From the NCBI GenBank assembly GCA_964247055.1, contig OZ176051.1, positions 11,966,001-12,030,000 on the forward strand: 64,000 bases of DNA, written 5' to 3'. Positions 16,449 to 27,097 of this stretch are shown piece by piece. Numbering within the stretch: the first letter of the stretch is position 1; the number at the start of each line of letters is the position of its first letter. The notes beneath the pieces are model-generated. The model searched no databases. It worked only from the letters and a program-made list of their open reading frames with translations, and was not told the DNA's origin. The stretch comes from Paragordius varius. Its lineage: Eukaryota; Animalia; Nematomorpha. The position numbers were made by a program, and so were the translations under genes.

Positions 16449-16640
16449 ATCGCTTCTCTGGCTTATTAGCTATGATCGATTGTGTAGTATCTGTTCTTAT
16501 CAGCTTAATATCTGATATGGTTTCTCATTGAAACCCGTGATATTAAATCATTTTTTGTAGGTTTTGGGGATCGCTCTAGGCTTGCCTATCAATCCTCAAA
16601 CGGGTCAACCTGGTATTGCACTATATCCAGGAGTGGCCCA
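16449..16640 (+). ncRNA. U2: U2 snRNA, full length (divergent)
   Basis: Contains the 5' ATCGCTTCTC, branch-point recognition GTGTAGTA, stem IIa TATCAG..CTGATA, Sm site ATTTTTTG, stem III, and stem IV with loop TATTGCAC, in canonical order over 192 nt. Confidence 0.97.
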
Positions 16641-16661
16641 ACAATTATTATAAATAAAATA

Positions 16662-17657
16662 GATCAAATGGGAATTCATCGATTCCTCTCCCATATTAAT
16701 AGTTGATAATAAACGACTCAGTATCGAACAACGTTCTTCAGTAGTTTCCATGCTCAGACGCTCTCGGCGTGCGCTAAAAGACGCAGAACTCCATCACTTT
16801 GCCCTACAAGGACGAGTGATGGAATGCGTAGCCGCCGATCGAGCCAGCCATTCCTTTCTCTACACAGGAGAACACATGAGATTTCGTGATTGGAAATTCA
16901 TCCATCGCGCCAGGCTCAATCTCCTCCCCACAAATTCCCGCAAACACGATCCCACACTTAAATGCCGACGGTGTGGCAAAGACAATGAAACCCCCGCCCA
17001 CGTCCTCAATAATTGCTTGAAAGAGAGCAACTTAATCACCAAGAGACACAACCTTATTGTAAATAGGATAAAAGACGCACTACCATCTAATTTCGAAATC
17101 ATCAACGAGAATGAGGTAGTTGACTCATCTCGTCTTCGTCCTGACCTAATCGTTACCGATGGAACATCGTGCTTCATCATCGATCCGACGGTACCATATG
17201 AAAATAGGATTTCCTCTTTCCATCATGCTGCAACAAACAAACTTATCAAATATGAATCCATCGCCAATGGACTACGAGAGCGCTTCAACGATGTCGAAGT
17301 CATACCAATCGTCGTTGGATCTCTGGGTTCCTGGTACTGCAACAATGACGTGATATTCGACAGAATTCCAATGAAGACCCCAAACCTCTTAAAGAAGCTG
17401 ATCATATCAGACGTCATCAAAGCGTCATGCGATATGTTTCACTACTTTATGAGTGGACGAAATGAAACAAACAATACAAACATCTCTTCATAATTTATGT
17501 TTTTTTTATTTTATATTATGCAATTTGCATCATTGTTCTTCTACAATTTCATCCATATTCACTCAATAATTGTTAGATAGGCCACTTGCATTTTCGTATT
17601 CTCTTTTCAGATTCTCAATCTACAAATATTAAAAATATATATTACTCTATAATAAAT
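16662..17657 (+). mobile_element. Utopia-type RLE non-LTR retrotransposon, lineage A, 5'-truncated
   Basis: Uninterrupted ORF 16750-17493 with a CCHC knuckle (CRRCGKDNETPAHVLNNC) and RLE motifs RHN, RPD, IIDPT and K..KY. The 3' UTR ends AATAAAT, joined to U2 nt 40 (TATCTGTTC), matching the U2-targeting habit of Utopia. Confidence 0.93.
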
Positions 17658-17810
17658 TATCTGTTCTTATCAGCTTAATATCTGATATGGTTTCTCATTG
17701 AAACCCGTGATATTAAATCATTTTTTGTAGGTTTTGGGGATCGCTCTAGGCTTGCCTATCAATCCTCAAACGGGTCAACCTGGTATTGCACTATATCCAG
17801 GAGTGGCCCA
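17658..17810 (+). pseudogene. U2: U2 snRNA 3' fragment (nt 40-192) downstream of a Utopia insertion
   Basis: Identical to 16488-16640. It lacks the 5' 39 nt. Confidence 0.95.
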
Positions 17811-17870
17811 ACAATTATTATAAATAAAATAATTCAGAATATCTTATCCCTTCACTTTTTTTAATAATTT

Positions 17871-17987
17871 CGTCAGCCAACTGTTTAACATAATTTACAG
17901 CATTAACACGCTTATTCAAGTACAGTAAACGCCTAAAAAAGACCTCTTTAGAGGTCGTATCAGATATTAAGCTGATAAGAATAGAGA
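17871..17987 (-). pseudogene. Variant U2-like 3' fragment (class B), copy 1
   Basis: TCTCTATTCTTATCAGCTTAATATCTGATACG (U2 stem IIa), then hairpin GACCTC-TAAA-GAGGTC, a U6 tract and two further hairpins. It directly follows a Utopia-A 3' end. Confidence 0.7.
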
Positions 17988-18177
17988 ATTTATTATAAAG
18001 TTATATAAATTTTTAATATAGATTAAGAATCTAAAATAAGAATACAAAAATGCAAATAGCCTATCTAACAATTAAAGAATGAATATGGATAAAATTATAT
18101 AGGAACATTGATGCAATTTGGGTAATATAAAAATAAAAAAACATTAATTAAGAAGAAATGTTTGGATGTGTGGCCCC
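17988..18177 (-). mobile_element. Utopia lineage A 3' UTR remnant
   Basis: The reverse complement aligns with the 3' UTR at about 17480-17657 and with 22573-22747. Confidence 0.85.
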
Positions 18178-21100
18178 CTTTTGGTTATATATTAATTATC
18201 CGGGTGATTAGGAATTTATTTATTTCCATTCTTTAATCCTTTGGTCCATCTAAATTTCTTTCCAGTATTATATATTGTTTATTTTTATAGATATGATATC
18301 AACCAACATTATTAGCTCCAACAACGTACAAATCATGTTTCGCCTTACAATAAGTGATAATGATAATCAACCAGTGTCCTGCAAGACAACCTTCTGCCAT
18401 ACCTCTGTCACCACGGTCAATACTCAAAGCCATCTATCATTCTGTGTCAACCCGTCGACAACTCCAACACCCGATATTGGCTCTCTCTATGAACACCAAT
18501 TCCCTTCACTCTCTTCATCTCAGTTCTACGACAACGTGTACACAGCTACCAATCAGTCATCCAATCAGGCCAAATCTCCCAGCTCAAACATTAAACGCAA
18601 GACCATCCTTGATCTTGCCCATCCAGCCAACAAAATGCTTAAGATAAATAATAATGATGATGATAATGATGGCGACCTATTGGAGGTGATGCCACATCAA
18701 CCTACCCTGCAAGACAAAACCCTATCCTTCTATTTCCCTTTACCGAATCACTTTTTATGTCCGTTTGAATCTTGCAATCATCAATTTCGTTGTAAATCCT
18801 GGACTGCCCAGAGACAGTCTCTTCTACGTCATATTAAGCTGGTCCATAAAGAACTAATCAAAATAGTTAATATTTGCAAACCTTGTAACAAAGTTTTATC
18901 TATTCACCCAAGTATACATATGAAAGAGTGCATTTTTGCGTCCAAATCTCCTATTTTCCAAATGCCTCACGCATGTGATGCGTGTGAAATGTCGTTTCCC
19001 AAGCGCATGTCTCTCTTATCTCATAAAAGGTCTCATAATCTACCTCCTCATCCTCACAGTAAACCGTTAAGTTTGTCAAACCTCCGATTCAATCCGTCTA
19101 ATAAGCCTAAGGTTGTCGAGTCATCTCCAACCCACAGTAAACTTTTTTGATCCACCCAGCTCTCCAGTTAATTCTTCTCCTACCAAAGTGAGTGGGACCT
19201 CAAACATCATTGGTAAGGGACATGAAGGCAATAATTTCAGTACGGATATTAATTCCAATATTCTAAATCCCAGTAGTTCGGTAAACAAAAATTATTTTAA
19301 TTACTTTTCTCAGAATGAAGTCTCTTTCTCTAATCGTTTTACAATTCTTGAGGAGAGTATTGATGAGGAACCCACTTCATCGGTTACTCTACCTACACCA
19401 AATAAAAGTTTTAATAAATCATCTGCTTTAAATAAAAATACTTTTCCTTTCACTAATTTTAATAACCTTCTTGACTCCCACGACGAGAATTCCGACTGGA
19501 AGGATATTTGTTCTTTAATAATCTCTATTCAAAATGCAATATCTCCTCCCCGGGCTGATTATAATAAGTCTAAAAGTTTGGTTCATAAAGATTTAAATAT
19601 TCGAGCATGTATAAGAAAAATAGGAAAAAGGCTATAAGATTAATCGTTGATGGCCCTCCATCCCTCTGTAAAATTAATAACGAAGATATAACAAATTATT
19701 TTAACAATACAATTGGCAAAAAATCTGAGCCTATTAATTTTAATTATTCTAATAATTCTGTCCCTTTACTTGATTTTATTCCCTTTTCAGCATCTGAAGT
19801 TTCTGATAAATTAAGAAAAGTTTCTAACAGCTCCCCTGGTCCTGATGGTATTTCATATACCAAATGGAAGCAGGTGGATCCCAAAGGTATTCTTTTATCT
19901 AAAATTTTTAATTTGTGTTTAAGTCATAGAATGATTCCTAATCATTGGAAAGTAACTAAGTCAATCTTAATTTCTAAAAAAAAGGGAGACCCTTCTCTTG
20001 TTTCAAGCTGGAGGCCCCTTTCACTAAGCAATACTATTTATAAATTATTTACTGGCCTTATTGCCAACCGAATTTCTAAACATATTTTAAAGAATAACTT
20101 ATTATCATCAGCCCAGAAAGGATTTATGCCGGCTGCTTTGAGCATAATTATATTTTAAATAAATCAATTTCTGATGCTAAACATAATAAAAAAGATATTT
20201 TTGTAACCTTTATTGATATCACTGCTGCGTTTGACTCGGTCCCTCACCAGCTGATTTTTGAATGTCTCCCTAATTTTGGTATAGATAATAATATTCAAGC
20301 TTTAATTAGGGATATTTACACAAATTCATGTACTCAGTTCTTTTCCGCCTCTGGGTTAAACCCATTCCTTTCTTGTCTGGCATTAAACAGGGGTGTCCAA
20401 TTTCTGGCCTTCTTTTTAATTTGTCAATCGATTCTGTGTTGAGATCTATGGTGTTTAATGGTCACAATGTCCTCGCTTATGCTGATGACATTGTTTTATT
20501 GTCTGACTCTCCTGAACGTCATCAAGTTGGGCTCAATTTGTTAGAATTTCTTATTCATGATATTGGTCTTTCGATCAAAGCTGAGAAGTGCAATAGTATT
20601 TCTATTGCTTCTTGTAGTCCTGTTTTTAAGATTGGTGAAGTTGTCGTTCCCTCAATCGGTCTAGGTGAGTTTGTTAGATTTGAAAGCCTGTAGGTCTCAA
20701 TTTCATTAATCCCGTTCCTTCTACGGAAATTGTGGATAAAATACATAGTTCTAGCCTCCTCCCTTGGCAAAAGCTAGACGCTATTAAAACTTTTTTTATC
20801 CCACTATTTCTCACCAGTTGAGAAGTAATGAGCTTAAAATGGTTACAGGTGAATATCTAGATAAAAGCTAACTAAAGTGTTCAAACAAATATTAAATCTT
20901 CCAAGAGACGCCACTAACAATTATATTTTTGGCTCTCGTAATAAGGGCGCCTTAGGGATGCCCCTATTCCGAGATGACATTAATATATTTCGTGTGGATT
21001 CCGCTTTTAAATTACTTACTAGCTTAGATCCTTCTATAAGAGTTTCTGCTCTAGAGGAACTTAAGGTTTCGGCTAGCTTCCGTTTTAAGGTTCGATTAGA

Positions 21101-22223
21101 TTCTATAATTCCCGATCAATTAGGCAAATATTTGTCTGGTTATGAGAACCCTCTTGTCTCAAATCCAGCTAATAAATGCCAAAACATTTGGACAATAGCG
21201 AGAATTGCGTCTGAATCTCTCAAAATTTCCTGGTCTTTTGATGATTCTTTTCAGCCTACAGTAATTACAGACTCTAAAATCTCCCAAGACAATCGCTCAG
21301 CTGTTGTTTCTATCCTTCGATTTTATAAACGAAAGCTAAAGGATACTGAGCTACACCATTTTGCTTTGCAGGGTCGGGTGATGGAGTGCGTTGCTGATGA
21401 TAAGGTCAGTCACCATTTTCTTTACAATAATAAGGATCTTCGCTTCAGAGACTGGAACTTCATCCATCGAGCGCGGCTCAATCTCCTTCCAACGAAAATG
21501 CGACTCAGGTCGTCTGAACAAATGTGCCGTCGCTGCGGCAAATCGAAAGAAACCCAAGCCCACGTTTTAAACCACTGCCTCAAAGATGATAATATAATAA
21601 CCAAAAGACACAACGTCATAGTAGACTTGATTAAAGATAATCTTATATCAAATTTCAAGTTAAGTGAAAACCAAGCCATCGATTCGTCGAGAGTACGCCC
21701 TGACCTCATTGTAACAAATGGCACTGATTGCTATATCATCGATCCCACAGTGCCGTTTGAAAACAGGCTAGAATCGTTCGAAACGGCGTTCAACAATAAA
21801 TTAATGAAGTATAGCTGTATGGCTCAACAATTACAGGAAACATACAGCAACACCCAAGTCATTCCAGTTGTTGTTGGGAGCCTCGGCTCATGGTATTCGA
21901 AAAACGATGTTCTTTTTGAGAAGATCAGGTTCCGATGCCCTAACCAACTAAAGAAATCAATAGTTACAAGCATAATAAAATCTTCAGCCGACATGTACCA
22001 CATGTTTATGAGCGGTCGAAATTCCCTCATAGACAACAACCCATCAAATGCATTTTTGTAATATTTTTTATATATATATTTTTTTTATTATATTTTTTTT
22101 CTATATTTATATATAATAATTTTTTCTTTCTTCCCCCTTGTAACTTCCCCATGCCCAATATTGTTGCGTAGCACTTTTCTTCATATATTCTAAATTGTAT
22201 TTCTTATATATATTAATAAATTA
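18178..22223 (+). mobile_element. Utopia-type retrotransposon, lineage B, near full length, frameshifted
   Basis: Three N-terminal zinc fingers (CPFESC..HIKLVH, CKPC..HMKEC, CDAC..HKRSH), RT motifs (PGPDG, WRPLSL, QKGF, GIKQGCPISG, YADD), a CCHC knuckle and an RLE, spread over several frames. The 3' end joins U2 nt 40. The 5' boundary is approximate. Confidence 0.93.
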
Positions 22224-22376
22224 TATCTGTTCTTATCAGCTTAATATCTGATATGGTTTCTCATTGAAACCCGTGATATTAAATCATTTTTTGTAGGTTT
22301 TGGGGATTGCTCTAGGCTTGCCTATCAATCCTCAAATGGGTCAACCTGGTATTGCACTATATCCAGGAGTGGCCCA
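22224..22376 (+). pseudogene. U2: U2 snRNA 3' fragment (nt 40-192) downstream of Utopia B
   Basis: 153 nt with two C>T differences from the full-length U2. Confidence 0.95.
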
Positions 22377-22440
22377 ACAATTTTATATACAAAATAAATT
22401 AATCCCTTCACTTCTTTTAAATAATTTTAATATAAATTAT

Positions 22441-22572
22441 CGTCAACCAACTGTTTGAAATAATTTACTACAGCATTAACACACATTTATTCAAGTACAA
22501 TAGTTTACCGTGAACGCCTAAAAAAGACTTCTTTAGAGGTCGTATCAGATATTAAGCTGATAAGAATAGAGA
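22441..22572 (-). pseudogene. Variant U2-like 3' fragment (class B), copy 2
   Basis: Homologous to 17871-17987 with indels in the distal hairpins. It follows a Utopia-A 3' end. Confidence 0.65.
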
Positions 22573-25500
22573 ATTTATTATAAAGTTATATAAATTTTTA
22601 ATATAGATTAAGAATCTGAAATAAGAATACAAAAATGCAAGTGGCCTATTTAACAATTAAAGAGTGAATATGGATAAAATTGTATAGAAACAATGATGCA
22701 AATTGCATAATATAAAAATAAAAAAACATAAGAAGAAATGTTTGGATTGTTGTTTGTTTCATTTCGTCCACTCATAAAAAAGTGAAACATATCGCATGAT
22801 GCTTTGATGACGTCTAATATAATCAGCTTCTTTATGAGGTTTGGAGTCTTGATTGGAATCCTGTCGAAGATGACGTCATTGTTGCAATGCCAGGAGCCCA
22901 GAGATCCAACGACGATCGGGATGACCTCGACATCATTGAAGCGCTCTCGCAGTCCAGTGGCGATTGATTCGTACTTGATAAGCTTGTTTGTTGCTGCCTG
23001 AGTAAGGATAGCCGTTCATATGGTACCGTGGGATCGATGATGAAGCAGGATGATCCATCGTGACGATTAGCTCCGGGCGCAGGCGGGATGCGTCAACTTC
23101 TTGATTCTCGCTGATGACTTAAAAGTTTGGTGTGTCTCTTGGTTATTAGATTGCTCTCTTTTAAACAGTTATTTAGAACGTGGGCGAGGGTTTCGTTGTC
23201 TCTGCAACATCGTCGACATTTTAGTGTTGGGTCGTGTTACCGAGAATTGGTGGGGAGAAGATTGAGACTGGCGCGATGAATGAATTTCCAATCACGGAAC
23301 ATGTGTTCTCCTGTAAAAGGAAAAGAATGGCTGACCCGATCGCAGCTACACGTTCCATTACTCGTCCTTGCAGGGCGAAGTGATTAAGTTCTGCATCTTT
23401 TAGCGCACGCCGAGTGCATCGAGACTATGGAAGAACGTTTTTCGATACCGAGTGGTTTATTATCAACTATTAATGTAGGAGCGGAATTGATAAATTCCCA
23501 TTTGATCTTAAGGATCTTAGATGATTTACCTGCCTCTGTCTAAGGGTTTTGAGCTTTGTTGCTAGGGTTTATAACGTCCGGATTGTCTTTGCCGGAATGA
23601 TAGGAAGCCATATCCTCATGAATTGGGTTTTTAACTTTTAATCTATAAGCTGAATCTATTCTAAATATATGCATGTCATCCTTTAGGAGAGGCATGCCGA
23701 GAGCACCTTTGGGCCTGAACCCGTAGATATAGTTTGTGGTGGCGTCTCTTGGAAGAGCCAATATTTGTTTGATTACTGTAGTCAATTGTTTATCTATTGC
23801 ATCGAAATATTGTAATTGATTTGATTAAAGCGCAGTCTGTGCATGAGTCTGGGATAATAGAATGTTTTTATAGCGTCAAGCTTTTGCCAGGGGGCCAGCA
23901 TTTTTGCGGGATTTCAGTATTTGCGGCAGGTCTTTCAATGTCCAACCCAACCGGGTTACCCAAGAAGTTTGTATATTCTTGGTGTTGTAAGGTTCTAATA
24001 ATGCCATCATCAATCGAGAACTGGTAATTGGAATTAAGGCAAAGGGTGACACACTTGGAGGAATTTATGGTAAGACCGATTTCACTAAGGAGGGATGTTA
24101 GTCGGTCAAGCGCTGCTTGGTGGAGATGTGGGTTTGGATAAGCAAGCCATATCATCCTCATACGCAAGTATTTGGTGACTGTGATTACTCATTTTCTCAA
24201 TTATTGAATTAACGGCAACGTTAAATAAGGTGTTGAGTGAGCCTGTTGGATGCCGGAGAGGAGCGGGATTTGGTTTGTCAGTCCATGGGATGTCATGAAA
24301 GCTGTGGATGAGTTTGTATAGATATTTTTAAATGATATTAATGATTAATGAAGCTTTCGGATAGGCCGAAAAGGGTGAGGCCATTGAAGATGGCTTGGTG
24401 TGGAAGGCTATCGAAGGCAGCAGCTATATCGCATGTTATGTACAATGGAGATTTACTGTGCACCGCTGTTTTTATTTGAAGCACCCATCGTAGGGGAGGA
24501 AACCCTTCTGTTTGGGAGATATGAGATTATTGTTATTGGTGTATTGGATGATTCGATCTGATAAAATGGCTGTATTTGTTAAAGAGATTGGAGGCCACCC
24601 AATAATTTTGCTCAAATCTTAGTTCTTTTTGGGAACCAAGATCGAGATGGAATTCCAAGCATCAGGTATGCGTTGGTGATTGAGACAAATATTGTAAATT
24701 GCTGAGAGTAGTTTACCATTATTATCTATTTTTAACGATTTGTGATGCCGTCATTGCCGGGGGAAGACTTTGGCATTTTTTTCAGCTTGTCGACTATTGT
24801 GTTTGGCAAGATTAGCTCCATGTCTGAAACATTGTCAGGGAATGTGACTGCAGGTATCGAATTTAGCGTATAAGAACGTTTGATTAAGGATTTAAAGGGA
24901 GATTCAATCACTTGGGGATCTATTTCACATACTTGAGCGGGCCATCCATGATAAGAAGCATCGCCTTTCATCAATTGAATCGGTATAGGTTTTGTAGGTA
25001 ACGTGGGTTAGTATTTTTAGTTGAGAATTTCTTGGGATTGTTTTGAGAAGAACGAGGAGAATTGTGGTAACGGATGATATCATCCAATATTTCCTCGAAT
25101 CTGGCCCAGGGATCCGGGTGAGAACTGATATTATTTAATTCGTTGATAAAAACAAGTGGTTTGTCATTATTATCAGGTATCAAGTAGTTTGACCGGCCTT
25201 CCAAAGGAGGGGTAATAGAGTGTAGTGTGTCTGGTTCAACTTCGCAAATATTCGAAATGGATGTAGCATCATCCTCGATTGAATATTGGAATATTGAAAA
25301 CTTATTATTGCAGGTGATTGTATCGCTAGCGTTAAAAGTTTGTTGGGGAAACTTGCGACAGTGACTTTTAACTGGGGATTTCTGTAGAAAGAGTTTGTTA
25401 TCAGGATTGAATTTGGTATCAAGAAGCGAGATCGCTTTCTCATGATGGCGTAATGGAGCATTATAGGAACGAATATGATGATCCAGATTACTTTTTTGGG

Positions 25501-25582: not shown

Positions 25583-27097
25583 GAATGTCCATTAAAAATT
25601 GTAATCATATATTCCGAGCCAAGAAATGGACGGCTCAACGCCAATACCTTCTGAGGCGCCTCACCCTAAACCACAAAAAATTTATGATAAAAGTCCGGAA
25701 TTATTGTAAACCTTGCAATTTAGATGTGGAATGCTATCCCTCATCCCAAGATTTCATGTCACTCCATAGACTGACAAACCAAATCCCGTTCCTCTCCGGC
25801 ATCAAACAGGGCTGCCCACTCTCTGGCATCTTATTTAACGTCGCCGTTAATTCAATAATTGAGAAATGAATAATCACAGTCACGAAATACTTGCGTATGC
25901 GGATGATATGGCTTGCTTATCGCCAAACCCACATCTCCACCAAGCAGCGCTTGACCTACTCACATCCCTCCTTAGTGAAATCGGTCTTACCATAAATTTC
26001 TCCAAGTGTATCACCCTTTGCCTTAATGCCAATTACCAGTTCTCGATTGATGATGGCATTATAAGAACTTTTTAACACCACGAATATACAAACTTCTTGG
26101 GTAACCCGGTTGAGTTGGGCATTGAACCTGCCGCAAATACTGAAATCCCGCAAAAAATATTAAATCCCAATCTGGCCCCCTGGCAAAAGCTTGACGCTAT
26201 ACAAACATTCTATTATCCCAGACTCATGCACAGACTGCGCTTTAATCAAATCAATTATAATACTTCGGATGCAATAGATAAACAATTGACTACAGTAATC
26301 AAACAAATATTGGCTCTTCCAAGAGACGCCACCACAAACTATATCTACGGGTCCACAAAGGTGCTTCAGCATGCCTCTTTTAAAACACATGCATATATTT
26401 AGAATAGATTCAGCTTTCAAACTGCTAACCTCCCGCGACGAATCAATTAAAACAGAGTCGCTTGCCGAGCTCTCAAAAACAATAGCCTATGGATTAAAAG
26501 TTAAAAACCCAACTCCGGAGGATATGGCTTTCTATCTTTCCGGCACATACCCGACGTTACAAACCCTAGCAACAAAGCTCAAAATCCCTGGACAGAGGCA
26601 CGTAACATCTCAGTTCCGTAAGATCAAATGGGAATTTATTAATTCCTCTCCCACATTAATAGTTGATAATAAACGACTCGGTATCGAACAACGTAGTCTC
26701 GATGCTCAGACGCACTCGGCGTGCGTTTGAAGATGCAGAACTCCATCACTTCGCTCTGCAAGGACGAGTAATGGAATGTGTAGCTGCCGATTGGGCCAGC
26801 CATTTTATTTACAGGAGAACACATGAGATTCCGTGATTGATTTATTCATTGCGCCAGGCTCAATCTTGTCCCCACCAATTCTCGAAAACACGCAAGTCTG
26901 ATGTCGACGATGCGGCAAAGATAACGACACCCCCGCTCATGTTCTCAATAACATCTTGAAAGAGAGAAATCTAATAACCAAGAGACACAATCTAATTGTA
27001 AATCGGATCAAAGAGGCGCTACCACCAAACTTCCAAGTCATCAGCGAGAATCCAGAAGTTGACGCATCTCGTCTGCGCCCTGACCTTATAGTCACAG
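25583..27097 (+). mobile_element. Utopia lineage A pieces: ZnF1-2 segment fused to an RT-to-RLE fragment
   Basis: 25583-25746 encodes C..KNC..KWTAQRQ..H..CKPC. It joins through CTCATCC to the RT region (GIKQGCPLSG, YADD) and runs to RPDL near 27080. No 3' UTR or U2 follows. Confidence 0.85.

Follow-up and report, generated by a model that had tools for sequence, protein, structure and literature searches.

The stretch of DNA analyzed here, 64,000 nucleotides from Paragordius varius and in the following termed the window, carries an intact U2 small nuclear RNA (snRNA) gene on its plus strand, together with remains of U2-specific non-LTR retrotransposons of the Utopia type (Table 1). Three classes of intact U2 are distinguished in this genome, and the resident gene is of class 2. 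In a gathering-level Rfam scan, the plus strand of the window gives three U2 matches, one intact and two cut at the 5′ end, and the minus strand gives none. The elements are assigned to Utopia on the basis of their 3′ end, which is joined to U2 at nucleotide 38/39; their ORFs are broken at this locus. In the plus-strand element, the tail of which joins a class-2 U2 3′ half at position 22224, the ORF at 20328-20693 gives an RVT_1 match of 60.1 bits, with weaker RVT_1 and zf-RVT matches nearby. An ORF at 16750-17493, belonging to a Utopia family designated e, contains a match to the PD-(D/E)xK-type nuclease family PF15518 (E 2.4e-5), which at 24.8 bits lies below the curated cut-off of 27. The tail of family e is found in only four copies in the genome, all of them in the C2 cluster.

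Table 1. Features of the locus and related U2 genes elsewhere in the genome. Positions without a contig prefix are those of the window.
Feature	Position	Strand	Remarks
Intact resident class-2 U2 gene	16449-16646	+	RF00004, 155.4 bits, full model
Class-2 U2 3′ half, convergent with stub	17658-17816	+	Rfam match 17635-17816, 114.2 bits
Direct duplication of ~520 bp, left copy	17650-18167		matches 22214-22747, 87.3%
Non-U2 block, copy 1	17871-17940	-	private 10-nt deletion; no U2 match; fold z -0.43
U2 stub, copy 1, class 1	17941-17985	-	RF00004 positions 39-84; 44/45 against intact class-1 U2
Utopia family e, 3′ tail	17986-18167	-	ends exactly at U2 cut site; inverted match to 17474-17687 (+), 84.6%
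Utopia element, decayed ORFs	18168-22223	+	bracketed by the ~520-bp duplication
Direct duplication of ~520 bp, right copy	22214-22747		matches 17650-18167, 87.3%
Class-2 U2 3′ half beside stub copy 2	22224-22382	+	Rfam match 22199-22382, 115.3 bits
Non-U2 block, copy 2	22441-22525	-	retains the 10 nt lost in copy 1; fold z +0.70
U2 stub, copy 2	22526-22570	-	one extra substitution, in stem IIb
Utopia family e, 5′-truncated, ~1.1 kb, upstream of stub copy 2	22571-23652	-	inverted match to 16661-17687, 81.7%; match to region 7.9-9.0 kb before the window, 86.5%
Non-U2 block, third copy, without U2 head	C2:11958331-11958402		7.7 kb before the window; homologous to the window blocks
Intact class-2 U2	C2:11950601-11950798		beside fourth local unit
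Intact class-1 U2	C1:15223126-15223320		195 nt, 177.7 bits, model positions 1-192
Intact class-1 U2	C3:526786-526980		195 nt, 177.7 bits, model positions 1-192

The subject of this analysis is the minus strand of positions 17871-17987, which opens with the final letters of a retrotransposon tail and continues with a short piece of U2, hereafter the stub. An earlier note had recognized U2 stems IIa and IIb in this fragment, and this is confirmed: the minus strand from 17985 to 17941 corresponds to positions 39-84 of the Rfam U2 model RF00004, comprising stem IIa and stem IIb, with 37.3 bits and an E value of 2.5e-6 in a search of 241 nt. At this score the fragment falls below the RF00004 gathering score of 46 bits and is absent from the gathering-threshold scan. 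The stub begins exactly at the standard Utopia cut site. As had been noted as well, the U2 5′ end, that is, stem I and the branch-site-binding region, was lost at the insertion, and from 17986 upward the Utopia tail stands in its place. The Sm site and stems III and IV are also missing from the fragment, the match to the RF00004 model ending at position 84.

The spelling of stem IIb had been described as unlike that of the resident U2 and closer to the canonical form, and the comparison with complete genes bears this out. The stub is identical in 44 of 45 letters to class 1, intact members of which score higher in RF00004 than the resident gene (177.7 against 155.4 bits), while its stem IIb shows many mismatches to both class 2 and class 3. 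Judged by its letters, the stub is a true U2 piece of class-1 origin and no derivative of the resident class-2 gene. When the 30 best U2 loci of the genome are sorted, which gives lower bounds only, class 1 is represented by at least 2 intact copies and at least 22 copies cut by Utopia, class 2, which is confined to the C2 cluster, by at least 2 intact and at least 3 cut copies, and class 3 (C4:2626169-2626361) by at least 1 intact copy and no cut one; five intact genes thus face at least 25 genes cut at the Utopia site. The cut copies lie mostly at 250-530 kb of C3 and near the contig ends of C4, C6, and C8. In the cut class-1 genes, the position of the cut is always the same, and at least four kinds of Utopia tail occur in front of the U2 portion. 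That U2 paralogs of more than one class exist in the genome, and that the class from which the stub came is a Utopia target, was therefore correctly anticipated in the earlier note; the further proposal that this class is structurally distinct does not hold, since class 1 is a full-length U2 of 195 nt. It matches RF00004 over its full length and with all helices, and in the intact genes stem IIb is followed by the normal single-stranded stretch, the Sm site, stem III, and a stem IV bearing the usual loop.

The three intact classes share 73-80% pairwise identity, and where the helices of class 1 differ from those of classes 2 and 3, compensatory changes preserve them. An RNAalifold consensus built from these classes contains 47 pairs, 12 of which differ in both partners without loss of pairing, so that all three classes look like real, structurally constrained U2 genes. 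On sequence grounds, class 1 is the major, canonical U2 of this genome and the main target of Utopia, and the resident U2 of the window is a divergent paralog. Two additional variants were observed. The intact class-3 gene, located on the minus strand and scoring 153.3 bits, deviates at four letters that lie within ~4 nt of the Utopia cut site, one belonging to the branch-site-binding hexamer; its stems IIb and III differ in spelling while retaining their pairing, and it has a 3′-box-like word in common with class 1, located at the same distance. This class could represent a U2 paralog that escapes cutting by Utopia or one with altered reading of the branch site. The second, at C3:4529430-4529619 on the minus strand, is a Utopia-cut U2 with a class-1 stem IIb, in which stems III and IV are respelled yet complementary; it constitutes a fourth U2 variant, seen in cut form only.

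Downstream of the stub, the resemblance to U2 ends. A search for uninterrupted copies had been suggested along with the original proposal, and intact copies were indeed found, albeit with a continuation quite unlike that of the fragment. In the 110.6-Mb genome, the full 120 nt occur at two places only, both within the window, while the stub alone gives more than 20 further matches with 87-98% identity, all of which continue as normal U2. The 70 nt that follow the stub in copy 1, here referred to as the block, yielded three copies in 110 Mb when searched alone, all of them local. Within 17820-18060, no further U2 match was obtained at E ≤10 with the 4227 families of Rfam. Local alignment of the block copies to the 3′ parts of class-1 and class-2 U2 was no better than that of shuffled sequences (p 0.47-0.99 overall, and 0.74-0.99 for copy 1, 17871-17940). 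Nor did the three block copies show any excess of folding over shuffles (z -0.43, +0.70, and +0.70), which speaks against the view that hairpins in the continuation form a U2-like structure. Taken as a whole, the 117 nt of copy 1 reach a fold z of -1.91, which is carried by the two U2 stems, and copy 2 as a whole one of -0.03.

The relation between stub and block is seen in the third copy of the block. It has the same placement relative to a plus-strand class-2 U2 3′ half as the copies in the window, contains no letters of stems IIa and IIb, and is immediately preceded by the tail of a Utopia-like element of another kind. The fourth local unit, by the intact U2 at C2:11950601-11950798, lacks the block altogether, that same Utopia-like tail continuing straight into the U2 flank. 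Since the block occurs headless in one unit and is missing from another, stub and block are separable pieces. A three-way alignment places the join at the foot of stem IIb, within a T-run that is also present in the headless copy, where it forms the end of the other element's tail. The tract that had been taken for a U6 Sm-like site is this T-run; as it is common to the headless copy, it belongs to the neighbour and not to U2. The short hairpin reported downstream of it is found in copy 1 only, where it results from a loss of 10 nt peculiar to this copy; it is absent from copies 2 and 3, the sequences of which agree. The presumed U2 architecture of ~117 nt thus resolves into a join of 45 nt of U2 with unrelated flanking DNA.

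Other identities were considered for the block. By eye it resembles class-1 stems III and IV, but decay from U2 was rejected on the shuffle p values of 0.47-0.99 and on the lack of any Rfam match. The only other Rfam match, to snoR38 at 17827-17911 on the minus strand (19 bits, E 1.2), contains a box-D-like word that neither copy 2 nor copy 3 retains; it was attributed to chance, and a C/D-box snoRNA was discarded as well. A repeat or mobile element was rejected because only three copies, all local, exist in 110 Mb. From alignment and folding, the block at 17871-17940 is to be regarded as unrelated local DNA that is not part of a U2-like RNA.

Self-comparison covered 50 kb around the site. The direct duplication of ~520 bp starts at the U2 cut site and includes the initial 180 nt of the minus-strand tail along with stub and block. 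Because both copies of the fragment in the window lie inside this one duplication, they go back to a single event and are not independent. Between the two copies the stub differs in 1 of 45 letters, and the block by ~11% substitutions plus indels. Better keeping of the stub would not be what pure drift predicts and would count against a scar, but the difference is not significant (Poisson estimate, p ~0.06, based on few letters). A second direct duplication (16488-16661 and 17658-17831), of 174 bp and 100% identity, likewise starts exactly at the U2 cut site and leaves the intact U2 upstream; the class-2 U2 3′ half at 17658 is its 100% duplicate of 16488-16661. The family-e copies always have the same 5′ neighbour and are situated within multi-kb inverted repeats. 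One such repeat, with arms of 3 kb and 87.6% identity, covers C2:11951840-11957980 (~14.2 to 8.0 kb before the window) and comprises family e with its 5′ neighbour; its right arm ends in a class-2 U2 half, and its left arm stops ~140 nt short of the family-e tail, against another Utopia-like element. A partner U2 half was sought in the right arm of the inverted repeat of the window, which proved to be truncated inside the ORF at 27095.

Taking these data together, the fragment would most probably, with a likelihood of roughly 85%, represent the 3′ junction of a family-e element, a U2-specific non-LTR retrotransposon of the Utopia type, including a 45-nt tag of class-1 U2 that is joined to local DNA. 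Of the U2 sequence to be expected 3′ of the cut site, just the initial 45 nt are present; the U2 portion ends after stem IIb and is followed by the local block of 70-85 nt that also exists headless. This join was formed once and was later copied within the ~520-bp duplication bracketing the plus-strand Utopia insertion. The route of joining we infer from the surroundings. Favoured is a DNA-level breakpoint, which would correspond to the outer border of an arm in a Utopia dimer arranged head to head; within the same route, some other illegitimate join across a 2-nt overlap and the T-run would be an alternative. A breakpoint is preferred because the cluster is rich in rearrangements and the stub lies right against the end of another element's tail. 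In the present assembly, no copy of family e is found inside a class-1 U2, and so we infer the source of the class-1 stub. All three join routes, namely, the breakpoint and the two described below, would need a class-1-type family-e copy or U2 piece that is no longer in the assembly. From its context, the scar is assumed to be dead and to have no function of its own.

Retropseudogenes of snRNAs truncated at the 3′ end are known in mammals, and family e could have cut a 3′-truncated class-1 U2 retropseudogene on target, the 5′ 38 nt being lost through 5′ truncation of the element or through rearrangement. Insertion into such a copy would explain the clean end of the stub at the foot of stem IIb and the 3′ junction at the exact standard site, and it would agree better with an endonuclease of strict site specificity than an off-target insertion would. 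However, U2 positions 1-38 are not found upstream of the element in either copy, Rfam matches of U2 in the window being confined to the plus strand; no other class-1 U2 truncated after stem IIb was found in the genome; and the position of the stub right next to the end of another element's tail is what a breakpoint would produce. An origin from a truncated retropseudogene is consequently considered improbable.

Slightly less probable still is an off-target insertion, in which a read-through RNA of family e, originating from a class-1 U2 and extending as far as stem IIb, would have been reverse-transcribed at a chance T-rich nick, carrying the 45-nt tag along. The related R2 elements make use of downstream target sequence present on their RNA, and the join in question does sit in a T-run. 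The tag is of class 1, yet all surviving family-e junctions with a full U2 half are of class 2, which speaks for this route. Insertion outside U2 is documented for crocodilian Utopia families (PMC4640811). Against this stand the uniqueness of the event in the genome, the lack of a recognizable target-site duplication, and the fact that no family-e copy was seen in a class-1 gene; moreover, the 5′ neighbour shared by the family-e copies indicates that these spread as DNA segments and not by fresh retrotransposition.

Hardly credible is the original proposal of stub and block as the 3′ part (~117 nt) of a real, shorter class of U2-like snRNA that would possess an Sm tract of its own and a pair of novel hairpins and would have been interrupted by Utopia: stem IIa and a well-formed stem IIb followed by a T-run are present, and copy 1 folds somewhat better than shuffles, though owing to its U2 stems, but intact genes with this stem IIb continue as ordinary U2, the block exists headless in one unit and is lacking in another, shows neither fold signal nor U2 similarity, owes its short hairpin to a deletion that copy 2 (z -0.03) does not have, and occurs independently only once.

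With the scar as the preferred reading, the locus can be compared with known systems. Isoforms of U1, U2, and U5 are known in insects and vertebrates, and as in these animal snRNA paralog classes, several U2 genes of different spelling and the same fold are present here, class 1 being the canonical form and not an exotic one. The mammalian 3′-truncated snRNA retropseudogenes likewise provide U2 pieces that end after an internal hairpin and lie outside a U2 gene; unlike these, the stub is devoid of the 5′ 38 nt, sits on a retrotransposon tail, and has no flanking direct repeats that could be found. The closest counterparts are the Utopia-disrupted U2 genes described by Kojima and Jurka in 2015 (PMC4640811), in which the U2 sequence 3′ of Utopia starts at nucleotide 39. 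The elements of the present locus are probably of the same restriction-like-endonuclease non-LTR type, and their 3′ end is likewise followed by U2 nucleotide 39. Cut U2 copies outnumber intact ones in Nasonia, several Utopia families share one site, and U2 arrays are mixed with different Utopia families in Phytophthora, all as observed here (PMC4640811). In contrast to those genes, the U2 piece of the present locus stops after 45 nt and is joined to non-U2 DNA, and its class differs from that of the neighbouring genes. Furthermore, the published target-site duplications of Utopia amount to 0 or 20 bp (PMC4640811), whereas at this locus duplications of 174 bp and ~520 bp flank the insertions.

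It is conceivable, albeit rather doubtful, that pressure from Utopia drives the diversification of U2 in this genome, in which case class 3 could be an escape variant and the stub would record a class-1 past of family e before its move to class 2. Summarizing, a Utopia scar with a tag of canonical U2 belongs to a known kind of feature, here met in a new host, and the proposed new U2 architecture is not real. With this, a false lead is removed: there is no short, oddly shaped U2 class, and nothing at this locus suggests a special U2 for tiny introns. Scars of Utopia can carry short U2 tags to sites where these tags mimic novel small RNAs.
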